NCBI RefSeq assembly: GCF_030028105.1 | Contig: NC_092401.1 | Location: forward strand, 7,846,984-7,910,983 | Length of the DNA: 64,000 bases | Direction: 5' to 3' | DNA from: Mobula birostris | Lineage: Eukaryota | Part shown: piece after piece, positions 25,804 to 60,967 of the stretch | Numbering within the stretch: the stretch's first letter is position 1 | Layout: every line of letters begins with the position of its first letter | Translations under genes and position numbers: made by a program | The notes under the pieces: model-generated | Databases searched by the model: none | Told to the model about the DNA's origin: nothing | Seen by the model: only the letters and a program-made list of their open reading frames with translations

Positions 25804-26036
25804 TTAGTGGTTATTGTTTAGAACTCCGTCTGAATTCACTTCTGTTAAAGGAAAAGATTCCTGATCAATCCCAGAAGGGATTTCCTGATTTTTGTGGGGT
25901 GCTGCATTCTTGACCTCGTAATGCCCTGTTTTCTGAGCTCTGTTTCTTCGGATGCAGGCGACGACCAGCACGACTAACAGTATTAGGATGAATGGCGAGA
26001 TTATCAGCACCATCTTCCAAACATCATCTGGGAAAC
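25804..26036 (-). CDS. Exon 10: TM helix and cytoplasmic tail
   Basis: [47 protein letters not shown]...NNNH*. Acceptor ttttgtgcag. Hydrophobic segment followed by a basic stop-transfer sequence and a GxYxV motif recalling VCAM/ICAM tails. Confidence 0.9.
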
Positions 26037-32000: not shown

Positions 32001-35000
32001 GCTGTGCTTCCCTTTGCACTTACTAAATTGAATAAACAAATGATAAATCCAATAATTAAACATACAATACGAATATGGTTTAAATTTTGTAAATTCTTTG
32101 GATTGAACAAATTTATCCTGTCAAGTTCTATTATATCTAACTTTTTCTTTCAACCATCTAGAGTTGATCAAGCTTTTCTTCTACGGAAAACAAAGGAAAT
32201 AACGTTTTTGTGATTTATTCATGGATGATTGTCTTATGTCTTTTGAACAGTCGTCTAATAAATATAATTTGCCTAGATCACATTTTTTCAGATATTTACA
32301 GATTAGAAACTTATTGAACACTACTTTATCTACCTTTCTGATATCACATCAAATTGAAGTTACAGAAAAAAATTTTAGGTTAAACCCCTATCAGAAGAGT
32401 TTAATAGCAATTATTTATGATCTGATTATGAAAATACGTCTAGGTAAATCTGATTAAATTAAGTATGAGTGGGAAAGAGAACTTCAAATATCTTTACCTA
32501 CAGAGAAATGGGAAAAAAATTCTTCAGTTAGTCAATACTTCCTCAATGTATGCCAGACATGCCTTGATACAATTTAAGGTATTTCACAGGGCTCATATGT
32601 CCAAGGATAAGCTATCTTGTTTTTATTGCCATATAAATCCTGTTTGTGATAGATGTAATTCTGAGGTAGCTTCCTTGACATATATGTTCTGGTCTTGTTC
32701 TCTTCCAGAAAAATATTGGAAAGATATTTTTGATATTATTTCAGTAGTTCTGCGTATTGATTTACAACCTCATCCTATTACTGCAATTTTTGGACTACCA
32801 GTGATAGACTCTAGTCGTTTATACTTGTCAGCTTGTCGTCTAATTGCATTTGTTACATTAATAGCCAGAAGATCCATTATATTGAAATAGAAAGATTCTA
32901 ATCCCCCCCACTACATTTCAATGGTTTTACCAAACGATAGCATGCCTAAACTTGGAAAAAATTAGGAGTGGTACTATGGATCCTTTGGTTAAATTTGAAG
33001 AAACTTAGAGGCCATTTATTCAATATTTTCACATGATGTAAGTTGACCCTTTCTGGATCCCTTGTAGTAAGTTTTTTGTTCATGAATAGAGGAGTGGAGT
33101 TAACGACAAATAATAATTTTAGCTGATGTAGTATGACAGCCCAAGCTTTGTTTGTTTTTTTTTTAGTTTAGTCTTTTTCCAGTTTAGGGGGCTTTCTTTT
33201 TCTTTAATTATAAAATATCTTTTTCATGGTCAGATACTATGAGATTGGGAGGTAAACTATATTTGTTACTTGGAATCTGCGCTTGTACATGTTAATTGTT
33301 ATTATTGTAATCCGGATCTCTATATATCATTACTATTCCTGTTATGTTTAATTTTGAAACTTAATAAAAAGATTTAAAAAGAAAGGATTTAAAGCCCAAG
33401 ATACAAGAGAGGGATTGAACCTCCAATCTCCCGACTCGAGGCAGGAGGACTATCCGACGAGCTACACACCATCTGGTGTAGAGAGAGATTGTACACCTTT
33501 GCTTATCCTGGGCATGTCATAACTCTCAGCATTTACTCGTGATCACACAGGGATGATATCTCGGCTCTGAAAGGGTTATTTATTTATTTTCTCATCCATG
33601 CACTGCGACAAAGGTAACTTACGGACCTTCCATCTTGATTTCCACTTGCTTCTCATCTGTTCCAAATTTATTGCTGGCTCTACACTTGTAAATTCCTTGA
33701 TGTTCTGATGTTGCCTGGGGAATGTGGAGAACCCCAGGAAGGTCAGTTTCCCCTGTGACTCCCTGACCGGAACTTTCCAACTTCAGTGTTACCTGGGGGT
33801 TTCCACTGGAGTGACAGGTGATTGTAACTTCATCATTTACTCTGATGAAGACTGAAAACCTGGACACGGTTTTGTTATTTACTGATATAGTTGTGTTTCG
33901 TGGTTTATCTGGAAAAGAGTGAAAAGAGTGAAATTAACCAGCAACAGTACAGCACGGGGTGGGCCCTTTTTCCCATGATGTTGTACCGACCTTTATAAAC
34001 CTATTCCATCAACAACCCAACCCCTCCCTCCTACACAGCCCATCGTCCTCCATTCTTCTTTCATTCACGTGCCTATCTAATTCTCTTAAATGTCCCTTAT
34101 GTATCCGGCTCAACACCCTCCCCTGACAGTGCAGTCCAGACACTTCCTACTGACTATGTAAAGACCTGCTTCTGACTCCGTGGCTCACCATAAAAGGATG
34201 TCCTCTGCTACAGCCATTACCTGCCGGGGAATTAGGCGCTGGCTGTCCACTCTTCCTACGCCTCTTACAATCTTACACAATCATCCTCCTTGGCTCCAAA
34301 GAGCTCACTCAGCCTTTCCACAGAAGACAGGCTCTCTAATCCAGGCAGCATCCTGGTGAATCTCCTCTGCACCATCTCTAAAGCTTCCTCGTCTTTCCCA
34401 TAATGAGGCGACTGGACATCACTACACTGTGACTCCAAAAGGCTGGAAAATCAAATTTGACTGTGTGCTGAGCTCACTTGTGCCTGGCAGCTCATTCCAC
34501 ACTGTCACAACTCCTCTGAGTGAAGAATGTTCCCCTCATGTTGACCTTAAACTTCTCAGCTTTCACCCCTACCTCATGACCTCTGGTTGTGACCCACCCA
34601 ACCTCAATGGAAAAAGCCTGCTTACATTTACTCTATCGATACCCCTCATAATTTTGTATACCTCTATACAATTCTTCTCAATCTTTTACATTTAAGGAAT
34701 AAACTCCTAGTAATAAATAAAGGTATTTATTACAGCATTTTTCCTTCCTAGAGTCTATAACTATTTTACCTGATTTAGCAATCAATGATATCTATTAACC
34801 CCATCACGTCACTGCACTGAAAACACTTTAAACCATTTTTGATAATGTTGTTCACATTGTAAATCCATGCGTGTATTTCAATATTTATTTAAGTTTTATT
34901 CCACATTCATGCTTTAAAATTTATTTTTATATAATTCTCTGTAAGTGTTGAATGTTGTTGTATTTTGTCACAGTCACACACTCACCAACACACCAGAGCA

Positions 35001-38000: not shown

Positions 38001-41000
38001 GCCTTGGCAGTCAAAGTGAAGGATAATCCAAGGGGCTTTTACAAGTATATTAAGAGCAAAAGGATTGTAAGGGATAAAATTGGTCCTCTTGAAGATCAGA
38101 GTGGTCGGCTTTGTGCGGAACCAAAGGAAATGGGGGAGATCTTAAATAGGTTTTTTGCGTCTGTATTTACTAAGGAAGCTGGCATGAAATCTATAGAATT
38201 GAGGGAATCAAGTAGTGAGACCATGGAAACTGTACAGATTGAAAAGGAGGAGGTGCTTGCTGTCTTGAGGAAAATTAAAGTGGATAAATCCCCGGGACCT
38301 GACAGAGTGTTCCCTCGGACCTTGAAGGAGACTAGTGTTGAAATTGCGGGGGCCCTGGCAGAAATATTTAAAATGTCGCTGTCCACGGGTGAAGTGCCGG
38401 AGGATTGGAGAGTGGCTCATGTTGTTCCGGTGTTTAAAAAAGGATCGAAGAGTAATCCGGGAAATTATAGGCTGGTGAGTTTAACATCAGCAGTAGGTAA
38501 TTTATTGGAGGGAGTACTAAGAGACAGAATCTACAAGCATTTGGATAGACAGGGGCTTATTAGGGAGAGTCAACATGGCTTTGTGCGTGGTAGGTCATGT
38601 TTGACCAATCTGTTGGAGTTTTTTGAGGAGGTTACCAGGAAAGTGGATGAAGGGAAGGCAGTGGATATTGTCTACATGGACTTCAGTAAGGCCTTTGACA
38701 AGGTCCCGCATGGGAGGTTAGTTAGGAAAATTCATTCGCTAGGTATACATGGAGAGGTGGTAAATTGGATTAGACATTGGCTCGATGGAAGAAGCCAGAG
38801 AGTGGTGGTAGAGAATTGCTTCTCTGAGTGGAGGCCTGTGACTAGTGGTGTGCCACAGGGATCAGTGCTGGGTCCATTGTTATTTGTCATCTATATCAAT
38901 GATCTGGATGATAATGTGGTAAATTGGATCAGCAAGTTTGCTGATGATACAAAGATTGGAGGTGTAGTAGACAGTGAGGAAGGTTTTCAGAGCCTGCAGA
39001 GGGACTTGGACCAGCTGGAAAAATGGGCTGAAAAATGGCAGATGGAGTTTAATACTGACAAGTGTGAGGTATTGCACGTTGGAAGGACAAACCAGCGTAG
39101 AACATACAGGGTTAATGGTAAGGAACTGAGGAGTGCAGTGGAACAGAGGGATCTGGGAATACAGATACAAAATTCCCTAAAAGTGTCATCACAGGTAGAT
39201 AGGGTAGTAAAGAGAGCTTTTGGTACATTGGCCTTTATTAATCAAAGTATTGAGTATAAGAGCTGGAATGTTATGATGAGATTGTATAAGGCATTGGTGA
39301 GGCCGAATCTAGAGTATTGTGTTCAGTTTTGGTCACCAAATTACAGGAAGGATATAAATAAGGTTGAAAGAGTGCAGAGAAGGTTTACAAGGATGTTGCC
39401 GGGACTTAAGAAACTCAGTTACAGAGAAAGGTTGATAGTTTAGGACTTTATTCCCTGGAGCATAGAAGAATGAGGGGAGATTTGATAGAGGTATATAAAA
39501 TTATGATGGGTATAGATAGAGTGAATGCAAGCAGGCTTTTTCCACTGAGGCAAGGGGAGAAAAAAACCAGAGGACATGGGTTAAGGGTGAAGGGGGAAAA
39601 GTTTAAAGGGAACATTAGGGGGGGCTTCTTCACACAGAGAGTGGTGGGAGTATGGAATGAGCTGCCAGATGAGGTGGTAAATGCGGTTCTTTTTTTAACA
39701 TTTAAGAATAAATTGGACAGATACATGGATGGGAGGTGTATGGAGGGATATGGTCCGTGTGCAGGTCAGTGGGACTAGGCAGAAAATGGTTCGGCACAGC
39801 CAAGAAGGGCCAAAGGGCCTGTTTCTGTGCTGTAGTTTCTATGGTTTCTATTAGCCAACCTGAGGTCCCCAAAAGTGCCTGACGAAGAGTCAAAAGCCTG
39901 AGTAAAACTCAACAGCCTTTAGTGTTGATAATCAGATCACTTACACTGGACATCGAGAGTGGCTGACTGCCGTTTAACAATGGTGTTGGAGTGATGGTGA
40001 AGTGTCAGCTCGGCCTCGCAGGTGAACTGCTGTCCATTCAGCTCTGCTCGTGGATTCACAGTGTGGTAGATAGTCAGCCCAATACTGGCTGACCTGTTCA
40101 CTAATATCTCACTTCCCTTCTTCAGTCTGAGTTGAAGTTCCCCTGAGACGTTAAACACACTGCAGGTAATATTCACTGGAATTCCCTCAGTGGTGATCGG
40201 GATTTGGATTTCAGGGTTGGAGAAAACTGTAACAACAGAGAACATTGTTAGAAACTTTCTCAAAGTGAGCTCTGCATCCCTTCTGTGCCACTAGACCGGG
40301 GTAGTCAACCTTAAGCACAAATGATTTACTAGCATGCGTTATTCATTAATTTGAGGAAAAGCATAACTAGATGTATTTAAATGGGTATTTCCCATGTTTC
40401 AAGTTTTTTATGGCATTTATCTGCCCCACCGTCCGCTCATTAATACGCGATCCTACCCACAGAGGCAAAAACCCCTGACCCCTGCACTAGACTGAGGTAG
40501 CAAATGGAACTCTTTTGAAGTCTGTCTGTGGTACAGCACCCACCTACCTCACTGTGTGTCTAGTGGCTAAAGAAGGTGCTGTGGGAATTATGAAAAACCC
40601 TTCCCACAGTTTGATCCATTTGCTGGCAGACTTTAATCTCACTTTCAGTTTCTATCTCTGACAAATTCAATTGCCAGTATTTGATTTTTCATTCTCTTTC
40701 TGCAATACTATATAAATATGTATATCTTACTGTAATTTATAATTTGTTCTTGTTATCATGCATTGTATTGTACTGCTGCTGCAAAACAATAAATTTCATG
40801 ACATGTGCCAATGGTGTTGAACCTGATTCTGATTAATGTCCAGGCTTATTCTCATGCTCCATTGAACCTGCTCCATTGATAAACCCATGGCTAAATAACT
40901 ACATCCAATTCAAAGGTTCATTTTATTGTCAAAGTTTGATACAGAATACAACTCTGGTATTCGTCTTCTCCAGATAGCCATGACATTCAGAAAAACTGTG

Positions 41001-47000: not shown

Positions 47001-50000
47001 GTAAGACGTGCCCCCCTCCATCGTTTGTTGAGCTGATCAGAGAAGTACAAGAGGAGAGAATGCATCCATCAGCAGGGTACAGTCCTCGGTAGTGGGCCTT
47101 TTGTTGAAGTGACCACAGGTAACTTGCCCCGGGGAATGGTAGATGAGATTGTGGCAGAGTTGAGAACTGAGATGTCCCGGTTGTTATCAGAGGGTGTGCC
47201 CCCCCCCCCATAATGGTGCTGATAGGGAGGCCCTCTGAGGAGACGGACAATGCAGGGGGCTGCAAGTGGCCAGGGTCCGGTATTGTCCGCTATAACTGTG
47301 TGAAGAGAGACACCAGGCGGGAGTGTGAACGATGGAAAACCCTTCGGAGAGTGTGTCCCCGGGTACCTAAGCAGAGAGAGACATTGGGAAAACTTAGAAG
47401 AGACCTAGTGAGGGAATTGCCTGGCGTGTCGGGGGAACACATTCCCAGCAATATATCAACGAACACCCCACAGAAAAAATCCTATTCCCGAAGAGTTAGT
47501 GGGGCCAAGCTCCAGTGTATCACTGCAGATAGAGGGTATTTATACTAGAGCCATACCGGGCACAGGGTCGCAGGTCACTTTGCTGTACTGCTCGTTTTAC
47601 AACCAGTATTTGACACAATTACCATTGCCACCATTCAGTGCACAAGAGATCTGGGGACTCTGTGCGGATGTGCAAGTGGCTGAGGCCCTCGATACATTAG
47701 TGCTGATTTGTCTGGACCCTGTTGAGAGGGTCAGAATTTCACTTCTTTTAGGGACAAATACTTCTATTGGTATGAGGCTAATGGGAGCCTGCAAAGAGAG
47801 AACTGGAGGGAGCTTTCTAAAGACATTGTCTGTTCACCTGGTGTTTCAAGCTGCTCTCGAGGAAGTATGTGGCCACACTGGGCAGGATAATGAGCTTAGA
47901 CAAGGGACTGTGTGGTTTACCCAGTCAAAACCAATTGTGTTGCGGCCTGGGTAAGTAGCGAGAGTGATGGGAAACCCCAAATTTGCCAGATTGCCCGACG
48001 GCGAGGCCCGCTTAGTGAATGCTCCAGAAGACCACGAGGAGGAGTCGGGATTATCTGCTGGGGTTCTAGTGAGGCCCAAACTGCAGAAGCCCTTGGTTCT
48101 ACAGGCAAACAGGATGGCAGTGGCTCTCAGGAACACTATGAAGAGAGAGGTCACCTTCAAGCAGGGGATGCCCCCGACGCATCTCTTTGCGGTGACGGTC
48201 ATGAGACAAGCCAGAGGGAAACTATCTGCAAAAGGGGGAAAGTTGACCACTGAGTTATTCAAATTTGGGTAATCCCTGGTACCTGCGGGCTGGAAGACAT
48301 GATGTTGAAGCTGGAAGGTGTCTTTTCCACTGACGAGTTTGATGTGGGTTGTTCCAAGAGCACTCATCACACTATCCGTGTGACTGAGGACAGCCCGTTC
48401 AGAGAAAGGTCACGGTGACTGGCCCCTGCACAGGTGGAGGACGTTCGGCAGCACTTGTGCAAGTTGAAGGAAGCTGGGATCTTCAATTAGCCCAGAATCC
48501 CCTATGTGTCCCCAATAGTCATAGCCAGGAAGAAGAATGGGAAGGTACGGATGTGTGTGGTCTATAGGACTCCGAACAGTACAGCCCTAACCAGTATACT
48601 GTCCCGAGTATTGAAGACGCGCTGGCCTGCTTGAGTGGTGCAAAGTGGTTTAGTGTGCTGGACTTGAGGAGTGGATATTACCAGATCCCCATGAGTGAGG
48701 CTGACAAAGATAAGGCGGCATTTATAAGTCCACTGGGATATTCCAATTCGAAAGGATGACCCAGGGCATATCGGGACCCTCTGCGACCTTCCAGCGAGTC
48801 ATGGAGAAAACGATGGAGGATATAAACTTGGTGTATTGGTGTATCTGGATGAATTCATAGTCTGTGGTCAGCGGTCAGAAAAGGAGATATGGCCCAGGCG
48901 GAGAAGATGAAACACGTTGTGGTACCTCCATTACTGAGAGAATGGCTCAGATTGGAATTGAGGAACCAGATCCTATTCCGGGTCACGTCGCCTATGGACC
49001 ACCCTCAACATTCCCAGCTGGTTCTGCCTGAGAAGTATCAGAGGATGTGTTGAAGTCACTTCATGATGACTCTGGACATCTGGGGGTTGACAAGACCTGT
49101 GGATTGCTCAGAGATTGGTTTTACTGGCCCCAAATGAAACTGGAGGTGGAAGAATACTGCAGGTCGTACATTCGATGCATACAGAGGGAGACGCTGCCTA
49201 TGAGGGCCACTCCGTCGTCCCACTTGCAGAGTGTGGGACTCCTTGACCTGGTGTGTATGGATTCCCTATCAATAGAGCCAGGTGCAAGCAACGTGGCGAA
49301 TGTCTCAGTCATCACAGATCACTACACCAGGTATGCTCAAGCTTTCCCTACTAAGATCAGAGGGCATCCATGGTGGCCAAAGTTTTATGGGAGAGGTATT
49401 TCATTTGTATGGTATCCCCAGGTGGATACATAGTGATCAGGGATGAGATTCCGAGAGTAGGCTCATACATGAGTTACTGAGCATGCTCAGAGTCGAGAAG
49501 TCAAGGACTACTCCGTATCACCCGCAGGGTGATCCCTGCCCGAGAGGTTTAATTGGACCTTGCTAGACATGCTCGGAACCTTGGAAATCAGCAAGAAGAA
49601 CAAGTGGAGTCAACACATTGGACATCTGTTTCACTGCTACAACTGTACACGAAATGCAACTACCGGGTACTTGCCATATTATCTGATGTTTGGACACGAG
49701 ACAAGGTTGTCCATTGACCTTTGTTTTGGGACTGGTGAGGATGACATTCTCCCTGTCATCACGTGGGTTTCCTCCGGGTGCCCTGGTTTCTTCCCACAGT
49801 CCAAAGACATACCGGTTGGGAGGTTAATACAACCTCAATGCAAGAAGTATCAGGAACAAAGGTGATGAACTGAGAGCTTGGATACATACATGGAATTGTG
49901 ATGTAGTGGCCATTACAGAGACTTGGCTTGCACCAGGGCAGGAATGGATTCTCAATATTTCTGGATTTCAGTGCTTTAAAAGGGATAGAGAGGGGGAAAA

Positions 50001-53000
50001 AGGGGAGGAGGGGTGGCATTACTGGTCAGGGATACTATTACAGCTACAGAAAGGGTGGGTAATGTGGCAGGATCCTCTTTTGAGTCAGTATGGGTGGAAG
50101 TCAGGAACAGGAAGGGAGCAGTTACTCTATTGGGGGTATTCTATAGGCCCCCTGATAGCAGCAGAGATACAGAGGAGCAGATTGGGAGGCAGATTTTGGA
50201 AAGGTGCAAAAATAACAGGGTTGTTATCATGGGTGACTTTAACTTCCCTAATATTGATTGGCACCTAATTAGTTCCAAGGGTTTAGATGGGGCAGAGTTT
50301 GTTAAGTGTGTCCAGGATGGATTCCTGTCACAGTATGTGGACAGACCAACTAGGGGGAATGCCATACTAGATCTAGTACTAGGTAATGAACCGGGTCAGG
50401 TCACAGATCTCTCAGTGGGTGAGCATCTGGGGGACAGTGACCACCGCTCCCTGGCCTTTAGCATTATCATGGAAAAGGATAGAATCAGAGAGGACAGGAA
50501 AATTTTTAATTGGGGAAGGGCAAATTATGATGCTATAAGGCTAGAACTTGCGGGTGTGAATTGGGATGATGTTTTTGCAGGGAAATGTACTATGGACATG
50601 TGGTCGATGTTTAGAGATCTCTTGCAAGATGTTAGGGATAAATTTGTCCCGGTGAGGAAGATAAGGAATGGTAGGGTGAAGGAGTCATGGGTGACAAGTG
50701 AGGTGGAAAATCTAGTCAGGAGGAAGAAGGCAGCATACATGAGGTTTAGGAAGCAAGGATCAGATGGGTCTATTGAGGAATATAGGGAAGCAAGAAAGGA
50801 GCTTAAGAAGGGGCTGAGAAGAGCAAGAAGGGGGCATGAGAAGGCCTTGGCGAGTAGGGTAAAGGAAAACCCCAAGGCATTCTTCAATTATGTGAAGAAA
50901 AAAAGGATGACAGAAGTGAAGGTAGGACCGATTAGAGATAAAGGTGGGAAGATGTGCCTGGAGGCTGTGGAAGCGAGCGAGGTCCTCAATGAATACTTCT
51001 CTTCAGTACTCACCAATGAGAGGGAACTTGGTGATGGTGAGGACAATATGAGTGAGGTTGATGTTCTGGAGCATGTTGATATTAAGGGAGAGGAGGTGTT
51101 GGAGTTGTTAAAATACATTAGGATGAATAAGTCCCCGGGGCTGGACGGATATTCTCCAGGCTGCTCTATGAGGCAAGGGAGGAGATTGCTGAGCCTCTGG
51201 CTAGGATCTTTATGTCCTCATTGTCCACGGGAATGGTACTGGAGGTTTGGAGGGAGGCGAATGCTGTCCCCTTGTTCAAAAAAGGTAGTAGGGATAGTCT
51301 GGGTAATTATAGACCAGTGAGCCTTACATCTGTGGTGGGAAAGCTGCTGGAAAAGATTCTTAGGGATAGGATCTATGAGCATTTAGAGAATCATGGTCTG
51401 ATCAGGGACAGTCAGCATGGCTTTGTGAAGGGCAGATCGTGTCTAACAAGCCTGATAGAGTTCTTTGAGGAGGTGACCAGGCATATAGGTGAGGGTAGTG
51501 CAGTGGATGTGATCTATATGGATTTTAGTAAGGCATTTGACAAGGTTCCACACGGTAGGCTTATTCAGAAAGTCAGAAGGCATGGGATCCAGGGAAGTTT
51601 GGCCAGGTGGATTCAGAATTGGCTTGCCTGCAGAAGGCAGAGGGTGGTGGTGGAGGGAGTACATTCAGATTGGAGGATTGTAACTAGTGGTGTCCCACAA
51701 GGATCTGTTCTGGGACCTCTACTTTTCGTGATTTTTATTAACGAGCTGGATGTTGGGGTAGAAGGCTGGGTTGGCAAGTTTGCAGATGACACAAAGGTTG
51801 GTGGTGTTGTAGATAGTGTAGAGGATTGTCAAAGATTGCAGAGAGACATTGATAGGATGCAGAAGTGGGCTGAGAAGTGGCAGATGGAGTTCAACCCGGA
51901 GAAGTGTGAGGTGGTACACTTTAAGGACAAGCTCCAAGGCAGAGTACAAAGTAAATGGCAGGATACTTGGTAGTGTGGAGGAGCAGAGGGATCTGGGGGT
52001 ACATGTCCACAGATCCCTGAAAGTTGCCTCACAGGTGGATAGGGTAGTTAAGAAAGCTTATGGGGTGTCAGCTTTCATAAGTCAAGGGATAGAGTTTAAG
52101 AGTCACACTGTAATGATGCAGCTCTATAAAACTCTGGTTAGGCCACACTTGGAGTACTGTGTCCAGTTCTGGTTGCCTCACTATAGGAAGGATGTGGAAG
52201 CATTGGAAAGGGTACAGAGATTTACCAGGATGCTGCCTGGTTTAGAGAGTATGCATTATGATCAGAGATTAAGGGAGCTAGGGCTTTACTCTTTGGAGAG
52301 AAGGAGGATGAGAGGAGACATGATAGAGGTGTACAAGATAATAAGAGGAATAGATAGAGTGGATAGCCAGTGCCTCTTCCCCAGGGCACCACTGCTCAAT
52401 ACAAGAGGACATGGCTTTAAGGTAAGGGGTAGGAAGTTCAGGAGGGATACTAGAGGAAGAATTTTTACTCAGAGAGTGGTTGGTGCGTGGAATGCACTGC
52501 CTGAGTCAGTGGTGGAGGCAGATACACTAGTGAAATTTAAGAGACTACTAGACAATTATATGGAGGAATTTAAGGTGGGGGGTTATATGGGAGGCAGGGT
52601 TTGAGGGTCGGCACAACATTATGGGCCAAAGGGCCTGTACTGTGCTGTACTATTCTATTTTCTATGTTAATTGGTCATTGTAAAGTGTCCCATGATCAGG
52701 CTAGGGTTAAATCAGGGGATCACTGGGCAGTGAGGCTCAAAGGGCCAGAATGGCCTATTCTGTGTTGTATCTGAATAAATAAAAATAAATATAACACAGT
52801 ACAAAATAAAAATAAAATATAACTCAGTACAGCCCTTCAGCCCATCTTGTGCACATTGACCATGATACCATTCTAACTGCCTGCACAAAGCCTGTGTCCC
52901 TCTATTCCCTGCCTGTCTAAATATTATTAAAAGTTAAATCATACCTGCTTCTGCGAGCACGTTCCAGGAAGCTACCACTCTTTATGTGACAAAAAAATGA

Positions 53001-54264
53001 CCTTGCACATCTTAAAATCTTCACTCTGTCATTCACCCTCTACCCCGTCCCACAAACAGTCAGGTCCGCATTGGGACCTTGCTGTGTGTGGACTGAGAAT
53101 ACTGTTCACCATTGTACAGCAGGACACTAAAGTACAATGGCCCCATGTGTCTCCACAGTACTGATGCATCAAAATAGGAGAGATGATTGATCCAGTCAAA
53201 CACTCCCAAAACAACACACACACAATGCTGGAGGGACTCAGCAGGTTAGGCAGCATCTATGGAAACGACACTTCAAGCCGAGACCCTTCTTCAGCACTGG
53301 AAAGGAAGGGGGAAGACTGCAGGACACTCCCGTAGTTTGAAGAGTTCTGTATGGAGTGGGAGGAGCGCTTGTTGTTCGTTCATCTGCATTTGAAATAAAG
53401 AACTCAACAGCCTTTGGTGTTGATAATCAGATCACTTACACTGGACATCGAGAGTGGCTGACTGTCGTTTAACAATGGTGTTGGAGTGATGGTGAAGTTT
53501 CAGCTCGGCCTCGCAGGTGAACTGCTGTCCATTCAGCTCTGCTCGTGGATTCACAGTGTGGTAGATAGTCAGCCCAGTACTGGCTGACCTGTTCACTAAT
53601 ATCTCACTTCCCTTCTTCAGTCTGAGTTGAAGTTCCCCTGAGACGTTAAACACACTGCAGGTGATATTCACCGGAATTCCCTCAGTGGTGATCGGGATTT
53701 GGATTTCTGGGTTGGAGAAAACTGTAACAACAGAGAACATTGTTAGAAACTTTCTCAAAGTGAGTTCTGCAGCCCTTCTGTACCACTAGACTGAGGTAGC
53801 AAATGGAACTCTTTTGAAGTCTGTCTGTGATACAGCACCCACCTACCTCACTGTGTGTCTAGTGGCTAAAGAAAGTGCGGTGGGAATTATCAAAATTCCC
53901 CCCCCCCCACAGTTCCCAGCATCATTCACTCCTGACCCAATCTCATCAAGGCAAATGACACACTGGTTCAGTGCATCCGACAGAGTGGAACTTTGCAGCA
54001 CACATACACATACACACACGTAAACACACACACATATACACGCTCGTAAACACACACACATATACACGCTCGTAAACACACACGTATACACACAGATTTA
54101 TTTACAATGTCTTTGAGTCTGAGCAATCCTGGAAAAGCTGTCATTCACCATCACAACAGGGTTGACTTGGCCAGTAACCAGCCAGTGGTTTCTCAGTCAT
54201 TTCAGATGGCACTTTGCCTTCAAAGCAATGGTAAATAATCCACAGAATTAATTCCTTGTGTATG

Positions 54265-54309
<45 letters not shown>

Positions 54310-57300
54310 ATCTAATTGCAACTTATAGATTATTTTATGTATTGCGCTGTACTGCTGCCACAAATCAACAAAATTCACAGCGCATATCAATAATGATAAA
54401 CTGATTCTGATTTAACTTTGCTGCAAACTTCTGTCTCCTTTCTATCTAATGATACGTTTGCTGGCAGCCTTTGATCCCACATTCAGTTTCTATCTCTGAC
54501 AAATTCAATTGCCGGTCGCTGCTTCTGCAACACGATCTTATCCTGGTGCACAGATTTCTGAATGGATGTACACTACCTCAGTATTTGATTTTTTGCTCTC
54601 TTTTTGCAATACCATGCAGATATATATATCTTATTGTAATTTATAATTTGTTCTCGTTCTTCTACATGACACTGCACTGCTGTGGCAAAACAATAAATGT
54701 CATGACATGTGCCAATGGTGTTGAACCAGATTCTGATTAATGTCCAGGCTTAGTCTCATGCTCCATGGAACCTGCTCCATTGATAAACCCATGGCTAAAT
54801 AACTACATCTGATTCAAAGATTCAAAGGTTCATTTTATTGTCAATGTTTGTATGCAGAATACATCTCTCATATTCGTCTTCTCCAGATAGCCATGACATT
54901 CAGAAAAACTGTGGGAGTTGTTGAAAGAAAGGATGTTGACCACCTCCCATCCATCCCTCCCCACATGAAAAGGAAATCTGCTCCGTGTTGCTGCCAGTAG
55001 ACTGTTTAGGAGCAGGTGGGACACTCTGAAAGATTACTGTCTAGTCAAAGTGCTCAATTATCCAGAATGCTTACCGTACACATTAATGGTAATGCTATCA
55101 TTCTTTGATGAAACTGATGGATAGTCCTGAAAATCTGCCATGCATTTCAGTTCAGTCACACTGGTCTCTCGTGGTGTCCATGTAGCTGTTGCCTGGACTG
55201 TGGTGAGATTTGATCTACTGGCAACTGAGTTCCATTCCTCACCATCCTGAAACCACCTTAATCTCACCTTCTCGGCAGGGTAGATGTTTGAGACCTCACA
55301 CGTCAATGTGGTCTCCTGATTTACTTCTACAGGGTCTCTGTTGACAATCCTTGGGGGCTCTGGAAAAGCTGCAATACACACAAGAAATTCACTGCATATT
55401 GGTTTGCCTTGGCCTGTTTCAGATACTGATGGAATGATGCAAAACTGACCAGATCTTTATAAGCCTCTGTACACAACCAGGAGTTCATCAAACCCACGTC
55501 GGTATCAGCAGGTTCCATACTATGCTCTTTCTCTGAACTCTTTCTGCTCTTCAGGCATCCCAAAAATCTAACTCTTTGCTCCTCCCGTGGGCAGTAATAC
55601 AGAGTAAACGCTCACTGACCTATCAAGAGTGTGGTCTCAGTGAGCAGCTAGTTTGGGGTGGCACGGTAGTGTAGTGGTTAGCACAATGCTTTACGGTGCA
55701 GGTGATCCATGTTCAATTCCCGATGCTGCCTGTGAGGAGTTTGTACGTTTTCCTGTGACCGTGTGGGTTTCCTCCCACAGTCCAAAGACGTACTGGTTGG
55801 TGGGTGAACTGGTCATTGTAAAATGTAGTGCGATTAGGCTCGGGTTAAAATGGTGGATTGGTGGGCAGCGTGACTCGAAGGGCTGCGAGGGTGTATTCTG
55901 CATTGCAGTCTTTCAATCTATTTTGTTCTGCCCGTACTGGCCCAAAAGAAGGGCTGATCCCTAAAGAATGGTCATAAAGAAAACTTTAGGCACATTTGCC
56001 TTCATAAATCCAAGTACTGAGTACAGGAGATGGAACATTATGTTGAAGTTTTATTAGGCATTGGTGAAGCCTAATTTGGAGTACTTTATACTTTATAGTT
56101 TATTGTCGCCAAACAATTGATACTAGAATGTACAATCATCACAGCGATATTTGATTCTGCACTTCCCGCTCCCTGGATTACAAATATTAACTATTTAAGA
56201 TATTTAAAATAGTAAAAATTAGTAAATATTAAACATTTAAATTATAAATCATAAATAGAAAATAGAAAAATGGAAAGTAAGGTAGTGCAAAAAAATCCGA
56301 GAGGCAGGTATTGTGTGTAGTTCTGGTCACCTACCTATTGGAAAGATGTAAATGAGGTTGAAAAAGTACAGATAAAATTTACAAGGATTTTGCAAACAAC
56401 AGGAATTCTGCAGATGCTGGAAATTCAAGCAACACACACAAAAGTTGCTGGTGAACGCAGCAGGCCAGGCAGGACCTGATGAAGGGTCTTGGCCTGAAAC
56501 GTCGACTGCACCTCTTCCTAGAGATGCTGCCTGGCCTGCTGCGTTCACCAGCAACTTTTATGTGTGTTACAAGGATTTTGCCCTGGATTGCAGGACCTGA
56601 GTTATGTGGGAAGATTGAATAGGTTAGGACTTTATTCCTTGGAAAGCCGTAGACTAAGAGGAGATTTCATAGAATTACACAAAATTATGAGGGGCAAGCT
56701 TTTCCCACAGAGGTTGGGTGGTACTGCAACTGGAGGTCATGGGTTAAGGGTGAAAGGTGAAAAGTTCATTGGGAAAATGAGAGGAAACTTCTTCATTCAA
56801 ATGGCTGTGAGGTTGTGGAACGAGCTGCCAGTGCAAATGGTGCATGTGAGCTCGATTTGAACATTTAAGAGAAGTTAGGATAGGTACCTGGTTGGTAGGG
56901 GTATGGAGGGCTGTGGTGCTGATGCAGATTGACGGGAGCAGGTAGATTAAATGGTTCAGCACAAACTAGGTGGGCTGTACTTTTCTGTGGGTGTCTATTA
57001 CCCACCACCTGCACTGACCACCAAGAGGGACACGGGAGTATCAGGTAAGAGTGCAGAATTTGCAGGAGTTTGGAATTGTTTCAGTGATCTTCAGCCAAAT
57101 AATCTCTTCTACTTCCATGATTCTCTGAAGTTGTAAACTTTCAGTCTTGGTTGAAGATAAACAAGTTTTGCTGAGTGAATAAAACAAGAACTAAATGTGA
57201 AAACTTTCAAAACAGGACCGCTCATTGCTTATTCTTGCCAATCTTTAACCAATGTGGGGAGAGGCTAAGGGGCAGTTCGATTTCAAAATGGAACTCACAG

Positions 57301-60300
57301 TAAGTTTGCAGAGTCACAGATGCATTTGCAATTTGTTTGGTCCTGTTCAGGTCCAAGTTCAACTCTGACAAGCAGGTGTACACCAGTCCATCGTCTGAAA
57401 TACTTGGAGTGAAATGAAGGATGTTCTTCAGTGGACCATCATCTGGGTAACCTGGTTTCTCTGTGGAAATACTTGCTACAGTCTCACTCCCTCTGAGCCA
57501 GGTGAGTACGAGTTTGTTCCTTGGATAGACCTTCGGGCCAGTACACTCCAGCTGATATGGTTTGTTAACTTCCAGCATGTCAGGAGGTGTAACAACGCTT
57601 AAGTTTCGATCTGTCAAAGGAGAATCATGATTGACAATGGAGATTGGAAAATTCCAAATCAAAAATTACCCTGACCAATGTGCTTGTGGATCATCCCAGC
57701 CTGTGACATTCCCAGATTCTGTGTAACACTTTCAAGTTATACATAATTTTATGTTGCTGCCTTTCATCCTGTTATACTCCGCTATTGGATGTATTTAGAA
57801 CAAAAGTTTTCACTTACTGTACACGGGGACCACCCGTTTGTCCTCCTTCACTGAAGTTTGACATATTACAGTACAGGGCACTGTGAAATCCCATTTCTGA
57901 ACACTCAGAAATCGGTCTGTAATCCACTTATCACCCTTAATTCTGTTGGGATTTATCCCTGGTTTATATTCCAGAGTTATCGATGGATTGTTACACGTTG
58001 TACTGCAGTTCACCTCCAGGGAGTGTCCAAATTCCACCACTAGGGAGTTTGTTTTGACCGAAACCTCAAATCCATTCAGTTTATCTGCCAGAGACACACA
58101 GGGAAATGGAATCTGTTCAGTGAAGTGTTGTGTGCAGTTCAATCTCAGCTGAGAATGGATAGACTTACCGTTCAGACAGTGAGGGGACAGTTCACCAGAC
58201 TGATTCCCAGGATGGCAGGACTGGCACATGAAGAGAGATTGAGTCAACTATGCCCATGTACATTGAGGTTTGGAAAATTAGAGAAAATTGAATCAAACTT
58301 ATGACGTTTTGACAGATTTCAAGAGGTTGGATGCAGGATGTACGTTTTCCCCAGCTGATGAGTGTAAACAAGGGATTGCAGTCTCAGGATGGAGAGATCG
58401 AGCTGTGGAGAAAAATCTTCACACACATGTAGTGAAGACCAAATCACTAAATGTATTTAAATAGGAAGACAGACTTTGAGACACCAGTGGCATTTATGTA
58501 GAGAACACAGGCATCTCTTGTGTGCAACAGTTTGAATGAACTTCATTGCAGTCTGTTCCACACAAAATAAATGTTTGGTTCAATGGTTCCATTTAAAATC
58601 AGACAATGTATATAGTATACAACCTGAAATTCTTGCTCTTCGCAGACGTCCATGAAACAGAAGGGAAAAAAACTCAAAGAATGAATGACAGAAAATGTTT
58701 TAACCCTAAAGCGCCCCCTCCTCCCATGAACAAGCAACAAAAACTTCAGTCTCCCATCCCTCTGACCCCACTTGATCCAGCAAACATCAACTGCGCCCCC
58801 CCCTCTTACCACCCGCCCCCCCCATGCAAGCAAAAGCAAAGCCCCCAGAGACCAAGATCTAGAGTTCATCAGGCAGGATAATTTCATCAGCATAATTTTA
58901 GCCCTTGCAATTCAATCTGATGGAATATTTTCAGTCAAAGACCTTAAAGACTACTAAAAAGGGTGGATCTGATGTCAAACAGTATTACGGACCCCTGAAT
59001 TCTGCAAAAGTTTTCCCTGGAAATAATTAAGCTCCATCTTTCCAAGCATTATTCAGTAGAAATTACCCGATTCAGGTTTAATATCAACATCATATGTTGT
59101 GAGATTTGTTAACTTTGCGGCAGCAGTACAATGAAATACATGATAATTATAGAAAACAACTATATTACAGTAAAGATATGTGGATATTAAATAGTTAAAT
59201 TAAAATAAGTGCTAAATCAGAGATACTGAGGTAGTGTTCATGGGTCAATGTCCATTAGGAATTGGATGGCGGAGAGGAAGAAGCTATTCCTGAATCGCTG
59301 AGTGTGTGCCTTCAGGCTCCTGTACTTCCTTTCTGATGGTAACAATGAGAAGAGGGCATGTCCTGTGTGATGTGTGTGCTTAATGCTGGACGCTGCCTTT
59401 CTGCGGCACCAGTCCTTGAAGATGTCTTGGATACTACGGAGCCTACTGCCCCCGATGGAGCTGACTAACTTTACAATATAAAGTAATGATAAATTTCTGT
59501 CAGTTTTTATAAAGTGAAGCCAAAAATTGAGATAGGAAGCCGCATCTTATAGCACACACTTGTGCTGGAAAGTTTGTGAACCCTGTAGAATTTTCTGTAT
59601 TTCTGCATGAATATGACCTAAAATATGCTCAGATCTTCATGCAAATCATAAAACTAGATAATTAGAACCCAATTAAATAAGTAACATCAAAAATATTATT
59701 GGGAAAAATGACCCAATATTACATGTATTTGCTGGGAAAAGTATGTGAACCTCTGGAGTAATGCCTTCCACAAAAGTTATTTAGAGTCAGGTGCTGCAAT
59801 CAATGAGATGAGATTGGAGGTGTGGGTTGTAGAGATGTGCTGCCCTATAAAACAGACACACAAAGTCAGGTTACTGACAGAGCCTGCTCTTCTCATGAAA
59901 GATCTGTTATGTGCACCATGCCTCAGTCGAAACAACTTTCAGAGGACCTCAGAAGAAGAATTGTAGAGATGCATGAAGCTCGAAAAGGCTGCAAAAGCAT
60001 TTCTAAAGACCTACGTGTTCATCAGTCGACAGTAAGAGAAATCGTCTACAAATGGAGGAAACTGTTGCTACCGTCCCTGGGAATGGGCGTCCTGCAAAGA
60101 TCACACCAAGAGCTTGAAGTGCAGGGCTGAAGGAGATGAAAAAGAACCCAAGAGTAACAGCAAAAGATCTGCAGAAATTTCTAGAACTCACTAAGTCTCT
60201 GTACATGTGTCCACTATAAGAAAAACAAGAATGGTGTTCCTAGAAAAACACCACGGAGGAAATTACTGTTCTCCAAAGAAAAAAAAACATTGCTGCATCT

Positions 60301-60967
60301 CAAGTTTGCAAAAGTCCACCTGCATGTTTTACAGCACTTCTGGGGCAATGTTCTGTGGACAGATGAGACAAAAAGTTTGAACTTTTTGGCAGAAACTGTT
60401 TGGAGGAAAAATGGCACGGCACACCAACACTAAACTCTCATCCGAAATGTGAAGCATGGTGAAAGGATCGTCATGGTTTGGGGCTGCTTTGCTGCCTCAG
60501 TGCCTGGACAGTTTGCAATCGTTGAGAGAACAATGAATTCAAAATTGTGCCAGGACATTTTACAGGAGAATGTCAGGGTAGCAGTCCGTCACCTGAAGCT
60601 TAATAGAAGTTGGATAACACAGAGAACAGGAAGGAGCCCAACGAAGCGTGGCGTCTGCGACCGGCTAAGCTTTCGCCCAGTGAAAAAAGGAACGAGTAAC
60701 CGTGAAACGGTGTGAAACGCTCCCGGCAAGTTATGCAGAATAAAGGGACACTTTCATCAAATGTGGCCGGTTGAAGATCCGTTCACGAGACGCACTCTAA
60801 CCGCCTCGCAGAAACATACAGTTATAAACATTCAGCTTCTGATTCTGCGAGCTCAAACAGATGAATGAACAGTTATTACGTTTAAAGGTATTTGACCTAC
60901 CTGTTATGACGGAAAGTGCTGTGAGAAATAAAACATAACCGCCCGCTGAAATCTGCGTGTAACCCAT
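25804..60967 (-). CDS. ICAM-family cell adhesion molecule, 10 coding exons, 874 aa: signal peptide, 8 Ig domains, TM, cytoplasmic tail
   Basis: Exons 60967-60901, 58084-57818, 57610-57299, 55368-55075, 53721-53440, 43402-43091, 41749-41456, 40226-39945, 33908-33627, 26036-25804. Lengths 67+267+312+294+282+312+294+282+282+233 = 2625 nt = 874 aa plus stop. All junctions are phase 1 with GT-AG. D1 has the ICAM/VCAM double-disulphide pattern ([10 protein letters not shown]...PCTVIC). Orthology to a specific ICAM is not resolved. Confidence 0.88.
27700..33385 (+). mobile_element. Near full-length L1 LINE, inactivated, in the last intron
   Basis: ORF1 from about 27774 to 28623 (frameshifted). ORF2 from 29289: APE (FAQETH, GGDFN, SNHAP), RT ([22 protein letters not shown]), C-terminal CxxC-HMFW-like motif. 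A-rich 3' end about 33360-33385. Confidence 0.9.
33390..33475 (-). mobile_element. tRNA-like SINE head
   Basis: Minus: gtgtagctcgtcgg (A-box-like), ctcctg/cgggag stem, T-arm gagg-ttcaatc-cctc. No acceptor stem. Confidence 0.45.
33627..33908 (-). CDS. Exon 9: Ig domain D8 (membrane-proximal)
   Basis: [39 protein letters not shown]...[23 protein letters not shown]. Acceptor cttttccag. The in-frame phase-1 donor is AAG|GTCCGT; a GTAAGT donor lies 4 nt downstream. Confidence 0.85.
35463..36098 (+). mobile_element. Penelope-like element 3' fragment (GIY-YIG endonuclease end plus terminal repeat with hammerhead)
   Basis: Translates across a frameshift as [28 protein letters not shown]...[24 protein letters not shown]...[27 protein letters not shown]. 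Followed by a pyrimidine-rich UTR, the hammerhead and a tgtgtgtt end. Confidence 0.85.
35999..36036 (+). ncRNA. Minimal type I hammerhead ribozyme motif (best-paired stem I)
   Basis: tAGTC-CTGACGA-AGGgtctcggCCT-GAAA-CATC-GACTg: stem I, CUGANGA core, stem II, GAAA and loopless stem III. A G>A change gives AUC where copies at 5200 and 56476 have GUC. Confidence 0.75.
37770..39850 (+). mobile_element. Young 5'-truncated CR1 LINE
   Basis: ORF 37680-39443 (587 aa) with [33 protein letters not shown]. One frameshift near 39435; tttctatggtttcta tail. Confidence 0.95.
39945..40226 (-). CDS. Exon 8: Ig domain D7 (duplicate of D4)
   Basis: [21 protein letters not shown]...TLDVQ. Splice sites match exon 5, 282 nt. 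Confidence 0.9.
40297..40484. mobile_element. hAT-type MITE, 8-bp TSD
   Basis: TSD CACTAGAC (40289-40296, 40485-40492); termini C(A)GGGGT...ACCCCTG. The paralogous site near 53785 is empty. Confidence 0.85.
41456..41749 (-). CDS. Exon 7: Ig domain D6 (duplicate of D3)
   Basis: [27 protein letters not shown]...ITIDMY. Acceptor gtattgcag, donor G|GTAAGT, 294 nt, open frame. Confidence 0.9.
42034..42297 (+). mobile_element. tRNA-derived SINE (copy B)
   Basis: A-box-like tagtgtagtggtt, B-box-like gttcaattccc, CR1-like 3' end. Paralogue at 55655-55918. Confidence 0.8.
42350..42790 (+). mobile_element. CR1 3' fragment (copy B)
   Basis: RRLRGDMI...RGHGLRVKG; paralogous to 56580-56990. Confidence 0.8.
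43091..43402 (-). CDS. Exon 6: Ig domain D5 (duplicate of D2)
   Basis: [42 protein letters not shown]...VTLQTY. Acceptor cctttaacag, donor T|GTGAGT, 312 nt, open frame. Confidence 0.9.
43500..44135. mobile_element. Back-to-back Penelope-like 3' fragments (minus, then plus)
   Basis: Minus copy 43500-43930 ends in a QPDGMNIE remnant; plus tail at 43960-44135. Both hammerheads are degenerate. Confidence 0.65.
44270..45020 (-). mobile_element. Rex1/Babar-type LINE fragment
   Basis: [12 protein letters not shown]...[10 protein letters not shown]...[19 protein letters not shown]. Confidence 0.8.
45448..49750 (+). mobile_element. Gypsy LTR retrotransposon, degenerate, PNMA-type gag
   Basis: LTR 45448-46016 (TGTAAC...TTTCA) and tRNA-Pro-like PBS tgggggtatcatctgggat at 46021-46039. 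gag [24 protein letters not shown]; protease remnant [11 protein letters not shown]; [16 protein letters not shown]; integrase [12 protein letters not shown]...FYWP...[10 protein letters not shown]. RNase H and 3' LTR missing. Confidence 0.85.
49829..52665 (+). mobile_element. CR1 LINE (most of ORF2) inserted into a SINE, 6-bp TSD
   Basis: APE (GDFNFP, GDSDH) and RT ORFs with frameshifts. TSD GTTAAT at 49823-49828 and 52666-52671. SINE halves at 49757-49828 and 52666-52790. Confidence 0.92.
53440..53721 (-). CDS. Exon 5: Ig domain D4
   Basis: [28 protein letters not shown]...QFTCEAEL...TLDVQ. Acceptor gttgttacag, donor T|GTAAGT, 282 nt. Confidence 0.92.
53995..54095. repeat. Compound (CA)-rich repeat
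   Basis: Repeated acacacatatacacgctcgtaaac units. Confidence 0.85.
54267..54307. repeat. (AC)n microsatellite
   Basis: About 20 perfect AC units. Confidence 0.95.
55075..55368 (-). CDS. Exon 4: Ig domain D3
   Basis: [42 protein letters not shown]...LKCMADF...ITINVY. Acceptor gtattgcag, donor G|GTAAGC, 294 nt. Confidence 0.92.
55655..55918 (+). mobile_element. tRNA-derived SINE (copy A)
   Basis: Near-identical to 42034-42297, same flanks. Confidence 0.8.
56394..56566. mobile_element. Palindromic Penelope-derived insertion, 13-15-bp TSD
   Basis: TSD (tt)acaaggattttgc at 56379-56393 and 56567-56581, interrupting a CR1 fragment. Confidence 0.85.
56471..56508 (+). ncRNA. Hammerhead ribozyme motif, intact core, imperfect stem I
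   Basis: aggac-CTGATGA-AGGgtcttggCCT-GAAA-CGTC-GACTG. Confidence 0.6.
57299..57610 (-). CDS. Exon 3: Ig domain D2
   Basis: [42 protein letters not shown]...YTCLSELNL...VTLQTY. Acceptor cctttgacag, donor T|GTGAGT, 312 nt. Confidence 0.92.
57818..58084 (-). CDS. Exon 2: Ig domain D1 (ICAM N-terminal type)
   Basis: [42 protein letters not shown]...[23 protein letters not shown]. Acceptor tctctggcag, donor A|GTAAGT, 267 nt. Confidence 0.92.
59060..59470 (-). mobile_element. Rex-type LINE 3' fragment
   Basis: Similar to 16530-16980. Confidence 0.65.
59560..60620 (+). mobile_element. Tc1/mariner transposon, 3'-truncated, frameshifted
   Basis: TIR-like gtgctggaaagtttgtgaaccc. ATG 59918 [32 protein letters not shown]; LWTDETK and [16 protein letters not shown] motifs. 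Confidence 0.88.

Follow-up and report, generated by a model that had tools for sequence, protein, structure and literature searches.

An ICAM-like gene of Mobula birostris with eight immunoglobulin domains and a repeated D2-D4 exon cassette

The 64,000-nucleotide (nt) stretch of Mobula birostris DNA analysed here (the window; contig NC_092401.1 of assembly GCF_030028105.1, positions 7,846,984 to 7,910,983) is transposon-rich vertebrate sequence with zero N, and holds on its minus strand a gene with ICAM affinity in which a unit of three immunoglobulin (Ig) domain exons, D2, D3 and D4, is present twice. The two copies had separated before M. birostris and M. hypostoma split, and both are conserved in frame. 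The explanation that we favour, and consider rather probable, is that a single gene within the tandem ICAM-like array of M. birostris had its D2-D4 unit copied by unequal recombination. All ten exons are presumably joined in one mRNA, and the product would be a leukocyte-integrin ligand that carries a single head on a longer stalk, by three domains in excess of what seems to be the family norm. A sequence-only reading of the same DNA had already proposed a lineage-specific duplication of D2-D4 inside one gene, and we report here which parts of that proposal stand.

Each of the ten exons has an AG acceptor with a pyrimidine tract and a GT donor, and every intron is in phase 1. The spliced coding sequence of 2625 nt contains no internal stops and gives 874 amino acids (aa) in the order signal peptide (SP)-D1-D2-D3-D4-D2'-D3'-D4'-D8-transmembrane helix (TM); the exons lie where the sequence-only reading had placed them, and the frame is open throughout. 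Every residue of the product agrees with RefSeq XP_072104449.1 ("vascular cell adhesion protein 1-like", Mobula birostris), and RefSeq gives one predicted isoform only for the gene. The gene model is not new, being already public in RefSeq as an automatic annotation under the VCAM name. The exons, the two copies of the unit (blocks A and B) and the intron between them are as follows.

60901..60967, minus strand: exon 1, start codon and signal peptide (phase-1 donor GTAGGT; N-terminus identical to XP_072104449.1)
57818..58084, minus strand: exon 2, D1, ICAM N-terminal domain (Pfam ICAM_N; four conserved Cys, CSTTC...CTVIC; conserved Glu61, LEYKPG)
57299..57610, minus strand: exon 3, D2 of block A (splice sites; D2>D3 joint in relatives' RNA contigs; groups with M. 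hypostoma D2)
55075..55368, minus strand: exon 4, D3 of block A (splice sites; D3>D4 joint in relatives' RNA contigs)
53440..53721, minus strand: exon 5, D4 of block A (splice sites; donor GTAAGT)
43091..43402, minus strand: exon 6, D2' of block B (splice sites; fastest-evolving exon)
41456..41749, minus strand: exon 7, D3' of block B (splice sites)
39945..40226, minus strand: exon 8, D4' of block B (splice sites)
33627..33908, minus strand: exon 9, D8, membrane-proximal I-set/Ig_2 domain (aligns with ICAM-1 D5; weak donor GTCCGT)
25804..26036, minus strand: exon 10, transmembrane helix, cytoplasmic tail and stop codon (frame, splice site, match to XP_072104449.1)
53401..57637, minus strand: duplicated unit, copy A with its introns, starting some 27 nt ahead of the D2 acceptor and ending some 39 nt past the D4 donor
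39906..43428, minus strand: duplicated unit, copy B, collinear with copy A
43429..53400, no strand: intron D4-D2', about 10 kilobases (kb), transposon sequence without an ICAM exon

By self-BLAST and alignment the two blocks match collinearly through exons and introns, as expected from the earlier claim that the eight Ig exons include a repeated D2-D3-D4 cassette. Nucleotide identity is 88.8% between D2 and D2' (24 of 103 residues differ), 94.2% between D3 and D3' (9 of 97) and 97.9% between D4 and D4' (2 of 93). The introns of the two blocks stand at a substitution distance of 0.05-0.13 per site, and each copy has its own indels and repeat insertions. Homology begins some 27 nt ahead of the D2 and D2' acceptors and runs out some 39 nt past the D4 and D4' donors, so that the splice signals were just included in the unit, and those of D2' (polypyrimidine tract and AG) and D4 (GTAAGT) have been kept. 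The 10 kb between the blocks contain a long interspersed nuclear element (LINE) with endonuclease and reverse transcriptase (RT) at 50.0-52.6 kb, an integrase of a long terminal repeat (LTR) element at 49.0-49.4 kb, and dispersed repeats. When 43.4-53.4 kb were searched by tblastn with heads and tails from the entire family, no exon of the signal, D1, D8, Dx or TM kind emerged, only noise with E of at least 0.007; the best 'D1' match between the blocks (E=0.11) is without Cys and contains a stop. Comparison of this intron with the D4'-D8 and D1-D2 introns gave dispersed repeats only, with no remnant homology. These searches uphold the earlier statements that the blocks have no D1, signal or TM exon between them and belong to one gene with a single D1 head. 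A 'two genes' reading was rejected, the between-block tblastn having given noise only. The arrangement is an aged, real duplication within one transcription unit, neither a false assembly duplicate nor two complete genes.

Three LINE-type elements with RT open reading frames (ORFs) lie in the introns, at 29450-32890, 37680-39850 and 50013-52700 (plus strand). The element at 50.0-52.6 kb also has an endonuclease ORF, and an LTR-retrotransposon fragment (47.0-49.4 kb) has an integrase zinc-binding domain. Since the LINEs at 38.4-39.5 and 51.2-52.4 kb are only 71% alike, they represent independent insertions beside each D4 copy.

The age of the duplication was approached through trees of single and concatenated domains. 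For both D2 (100/96) and D3 (88/88), the block A exon is paired with the first such domain of M. hypostoma, and D2' falls outside a clade that includes the D2 of several other Mobula paralogues. When D2, D3 and D4 were concatenated, block A grouped with M. hypostoma A (99/95); this pair, block B and three paralogous genes formed a Mobula-only polytomy (97/95), sister to the stingray orthologues. An exclusive clade of A and B was marginally rejected (approximately unbiased (AU) test, p=0.03), and a clade of A, B and M. hypostoma A was not rejected (p=0.087). These placements indicate that the blocks separated in the mobulid lineage, before the split of M. birostris and M. hypostoma; the separation was about contemporary with the rise of the array paralogues. 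Trees of D1 and of D8 plus TM gave no resolution and did not discriminate between fusion and duplication. The 'lineage-specific D2-D4 duplication' of the sequence-only reading is correct in that the copy arose in the mobulid lineage, but is too simple, as D2 pairs with M. hypostoma D2 and D2' is nearest to a paralogue. The domain phylogeny that it had suggested as a check returned, with D2, D3 and D4 concatenated, a Mobula-only clade as a polytomy in which the blocks are not shown as sisters. The large tandem ICAM-like array makes exchange between paralogues plausible, and on the present trees and identities recombination between tandem paralogues appears as likely as plain intragenic duplication.

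Both cassettes bear the marks of coding constraint. None of the six cassette exons has a stop or an indel, and their splice sites are intact; between blocks A and B we counted 15 indel events in 2139 aligned intron nt vs none in 888 exon nt, where 6.2 would be expected (P=0.002). The ratio of nonsynonymous to synonymous substitution (dN/dS) is about 0.26 for D3 and D4 together (Fisher p=0.0015), 0.29 for D3/D3' alone and 0.15 for D4/D4' alone; a pairwise value near 0.5-0.6 is expected if one copy drifted freely. Across Mobula paralogues and species the D4 protein sequence is 94-98% identical, vs 70-93% for D1 and 77-93% for D2, and the intron beside D4 is the least diverged (substitution distance K about 0.055). 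Such a pattern suggests that D4 is strongly constrained, is a centre of gene conversion, or both.

The affinity of the protein was examined through its head, its domain order and its predicted fold. D1 is recognised as Pfam ICAM_N (PF03921; E=1.4e-8, 34.7 bits vs a curated cut-off of 21). Its four cysteines C49, C53, C93 and C97 (CxxxC...CxxxC, two disulfides) are invariant in 42 chondrichthyan homologues, and the CSTTC motif aligns with ICAM-2. In ICAM-1, the acidic residue E34 at the end of D1 strand C coordinates the metal of the integrin metal-ion-dependent adhesion site (MIDAS). Glu61 of the manta protein (LEYKPG) is kept in at least 90% of the 42 homologues, and HMMER aligns it with the integrin-binding Glu of the ICAM-5 GLETS motif, the ICAM-2 alignment being offset by two residues. 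Further HMMER alignments place residues 37-408 collinear with ICAM-5 residues 12-375, D1-D4 (9e-17), residues 30-337 with ICAM-1 residues 2-307, D1-D3 (1e-10), and residues 517-794, which are D3'-D4'-D8, with ICAM-1 D3-D5 (1e-4), so that the ICAM-like domain order claimed earlier is confirmed. Exon 4 (D3) alone scores as Pfam ICAM1_3_5_D2, and the collinear alignment puts it at ICAM D3. VCAM-1 gives a lower whole-protein score (2e-6), and ICAM-2 scores 6e-13 vs 1.4e-6 for VCAM-1 D1-D2. An AlphaFold model of D1-D2 has a predicted local distance difference test score of 93, and its top 15 PDB matches are all D1-D2 structures of ICAM-5, VCAM-1, ICAM-1 or ICAM-2, followed by a clear gap; this fold match does not separate ICAM from VCAM. 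The integrin-binding IDSP motif of VCAM-1, located in the C-D loop of its D1 and recurring in its D4, is absent from the manta D1, and the gene has a single D1-type exon, which agrees with the earlier statement that its head, unlike that of VCAM-1, is unrepeated. The predicted protein thus classes with the ICAM family by every sequence and fold test run, and neither head motif nor scores support the RefSeq name 'VCAM-1-like'. Integrins of alphaL type have been reported from cartilaginous fish onward (PMC8359198), and the integrin partner of the manta protein would be of alphaL-beta2 type. D4 is the counterpart of the ICAM-1 dimerisation domain (PDB 2oz4 title), and it may be speculated that a second D4 could alter lateral association.

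To collect relatives, D1 was used as query in an exhaustive HMMER search and the nearest Mobula protein in a word-based one; together these gave about 100 chondrichthyan ICAM-like models from about 20 species, with domains typed against the manta exons. Each model was predicted automatically, and some probably represent tandem genes merged into one. The form commonly seen is D1-D2-D3-D4-(Dx)-D8-TM, with 5-6 Ig domains, and shorter forms are D1-D2-D8 and D1-D2-D3-D4. Repeated cassettes differ with the lineage: D2-D4 in the manta gene; D3-D4, two or three times, in Myliobatiform paralogues of stingrays and mobulids (e.g. XP_062891853.1, XP_072925481.1); D2-D3 in the bamboo shark Hemiscyllium ocellatum (XP_060711116.1, D1-D2-D3-D4-D2-D3-TM); and D1-D2, three or four times, or D8, three times, in catsharks. 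The arrangement D1-D2-D3-D4-D2-D3-D4-D8 is found only in XP_072104449.1 among the models sampled.

Several models carry oddities of their own. Genes of the form D1-D2-D3-D4-D3-D4 carry two types of D3, whose order in Mobula is the reverse of that in stingrays (P0004/P0041 vs P0053/P0056), and a tree of Myliobatiform D3 domains joins Mobula D3b to stingray D3a at 100/100; this reversed order suggests independent cassette insertions or shuffling. M. birostris XP_072104331.1 and Scyliorhinus torazame P0001/P0002 have two to four D1 heads per chain, and in one multi-head model the linker resembles translated non-coding sequence. Multi-head models are probably read-through merges of tandem genes, and domain counts from annotation need caution.

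Splicing could be followed in RNA contigs of relatives. The material comprised RNA-like sets of two related organisms and a DNA-like set of a third, all from organisms other than M. birostris, with at most 0.23 of words matched; four runs were compared with block A and four with the D2' exon alone. On block A, in three runs from two studies, we found exact D2>D3 (57299>55368) and D3>D4 (55075>53721) joints with GT..AG, in contigs that differ from the window by 5-10% of letters. On D2', the contigs that reach the 5' end all diverge at 43393 and continue into ATCGAAACT after a D1-type end (VVPVY), and a D2'-specific start was never seen in the four runs. The ATCGAAACT joint corresponds to the usual D1>D2 splice in genes or species other than this one. 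As these contigs come from other species or paralogues, they provide no evidence for or against a D4>D2' junction in M. birostris. In RNA contigs from two runs of one relative, 30 nt from the middle of D2 (57483-57512) run straight into the beginning of D4 (53722), with no GT..AG; this joint may come from a paralogue with another upstream exon or from an assembly chimera.

The cassette exons are all multiples of 3 nt and in phase 1; a skip from D4 to D8 gives the junction residue Y and one from D1 to D2' gives N. Skipping is consequently frame-neutral, as the sequence-only reading had pointed out from phase symmetry. The D8 donor is a weak GTCCGT (33590-33630, minus strand), at which read-through stops after two codons (..MEGP*); read-through at D4 and D4' stops after CK*. 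Intron retention at these sites would therefore give soluble forms.

A number of observations weigh against the favoured explanation or parts of it. Block B is about as near to the paralogue XP_072104326.1 (88%) as to block A (89%), and the manta gene, judged from its trees, seems older and less simply 'intragenic' than first proposed. D2/D2' has a dN/dS of 0.87, with dN at 0.119 vs 0.082 for the flanking intron K (p=0.14), and the rate of D2' fits relaxed or changed constraint. At that p value we do not claim positive selection on D2', although its dN is above intron divergence. Altered constraint would fit a D2 copy no longer packing against D1; the D2' branch is 0.17 long vs 0.06 for D2 in the domain tree, and D2' retains the canonical Cys and Trp. 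On the transcript side, the contigs on block A contained no joint going back from D4 to D2, D2-type exons in the relatives' contigs are preceded by a D1 end (...GTGGTTCCAGTGTACA|ATCGAAACT), and a protein-fragment search with a 91-aa peptide spanning the D4/D2' junction gave no match. The RefSeq entry is itself predicted, possibly along the same lines as the sequence-only reading. In the relatives, the predicted M. hypostoma orthologue XP_062891894.1 is without a second D2, and cassette repeats are common in chondrichthyan ICAM-like models, the manta gene being one instance.

These points bear on four other explanations. One of them concerns the origin only, and we give it an appreciable, though less than even, chance: a fusion of neighbouring paralogues, in which SP-D1-D2-D3-D4 of one gene was joined to D2-D3-D4-(Dx)-D8-TM of an XP_072104326.1-like gene after a deletion or unequal crossover had removed D8/TM of the first and the signal/D1 exons of the second. 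D2' and D3' are most similar to the domains of that paralogue (83% and 92%), D2' shares motifs with it and not with D2, and the cytoplasmic tails of the two genes do not differ over 41 residues; D2 is also nearer to the D2 of several other paralogues than to D2', and the array is large and tandem. However, the block tree is a polytomy in which the clade of A, B and M. hypostoma A was not rejected, homology ends within 27-39 nt of the outer exons with no D8, TM, signal or D1 remnant between the blocks, and gene conversion within the array could yield the same pattern. That the second block is an assembly artefact, a haplotype or paralogue misplaced in tandem, is very improbable: the copies are 2-11% diverged, each has transposon insertions and indels of its own, and they lie 10 kb apart with unique transposon sequence and no gaps between them. 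The misassembly that the sequence-only reading had named as a possible objection is opposed at the sequence level by this divergence, the insertions and the lack of N.

The remaining two explanations accept both blocks but dispute the eight-domain protein. The cassettes may be used as alternatives, the main products being the five-Ig forms D1-[D2-D3-D4]-D8-TM and/or D1-[D2'-D3'-D4']-D8-TM, with the eight-Ig form minor or absent. We regard this as unlikely. The frame-neutral exons and the identical junction residues (Y or N) left by skipping would allow it, the usual chondrichthyan form has 5-6 Ig domains, D2-type exons follow D1 in the relatives' RNA, and alternative use would also hold both cassettes under purifying selection; but RefSeq has a single isoform, no skipping junction is evidenced, the splice sites on either side of the 10-kb intron are strong and ordinary, and where cassettes are repeated in other models of the family, the prediction is a long form. 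Less probable again is that one cassette is dead and never spliced in, with block B, or D2' at the least, as the likeliest candidate, and that the eight-Ig protein is an annotation artefact. The dN/dS and long branch of D2', the lack of a transcript match to the D4>D2' joint in the relatives' contigs or the fragment search, and the M. hypostoma model without D2' agree with such a remnant; against it, all six cassette exons are free of stops and of the 6.2 indels expected (P=0.002), with intact splice sites, D3' and D4' are under clear purifying selection, and D2' keeps its canonical Cys and Trp.

We thus return to copying of the D2-D4 unit by unequal recombination. The product would span the membrane as a type I protein, with D1 as its one ICAM-type integrin-binding head, then seven more Ig domains, a TM helix and a short tail. 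Its three extra domains come from a second copy of a genomic unit of about 4 kb, made up of the D2, D3 and D4 exons with their introns; this copy would have been produced by unequal recombination inside the array, the partner being the gene itself or a neighbouring paralogue. The copying falls in the Mobula lineage, later than the divergence from stingrays and earlier than the separation of M. birostris and M. hypostoma, and transposons would later have expanded the new intron to 10 kb.

Exon-cassette duplication in phase-1 genes of the immunoglobulin superfamily is a textbook mechanism, and with the model already in RefSeq and the long form predicted, the value of the present case is limited. 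It is nevertheless a clean, datable case of an ICAM gaining stalk length without a second binding site, and together with its relatives it portrays the chondrichthyan ICAM array as structurally restless. Cartilaginous fish are where ICAM-type ligands make their first appearance alongside leukocyte integrins of alphaL type, and the ligands of these fish have hardly been published on; a full-text literature search found no paper on chondrichthyan ICAMs or on ICAM exon duplication. A wider conjecture, which we put forward with considerable doubt, is that chondrichthyan ICAM-like arrays use phase-1 Ig exons as interchangeable cassettes, with independent lineages re-iterating different ones behind a single head to give graded stalk lengths, D2' being under changed or positive selection and D4 nearly invariant; the manta gene would then be an expressed eight-Ig member, possibly with regulated skipping.

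Among the closest systems for comparison is the predicted M. hypostoma orthologue XP_062891894.1 (947 aa), D1-D2-D3-D4-D8-D3-D4-Dx-D8-TM. Its signal peptide and D1-D4 are 93-95% identical to those of the manta gene, its D8, TM and tail are of the same type, and it also has a second D3-D4 pair. It differs, besides the missing D2', in an extra middle D8 and a Dx, neither of which has an exon in the manta window. Its two D8 domains (residues 409-501 and 777-869) are 99% identical, which points to a very recent duplication there or to an annotation or assembly artefact, and the model may be a merged prediction. The Hemiscyllium and Myliobatiform models also re-iterate middle Ig cassettes behind a single D1, but they do so with other cassettes (D2-D3 or D3-D4), in other lineages and without the membrane-proximal D8.

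Human ICAM-5 (telencephalin, 9 Ig domains) and ICAM-1 (5 Ig domains) share with the manta protein a single ICAM_N head, type I topology, a short tail and phase-1 exons with one domain per exon. Identity to them is only 20-29%, with orthology to no single mammalian ICAM established, and the extra domains of the manta gene are a recognisable, fairly recent copy of D2-D4 with its introns, whereas those of ICAM-5 are old and diverged. In the seven-domain form of VCAM-1, D1-D3 are repeated as D4-D6. The manta gene resembles VCAM-1 in that its Ig chain was lengthened by repeating a three-domain cassette, and its D1-D2 fold matches VCAM-1 about as well as ICAM. Unlike VCAM-1, it has LEYKPG at the putative ICAM Glu position of D1 instead of the VCAM IDSP loop, and its cassette excludes the integrin-binding D1, so that the longer chain carries one head and not two.

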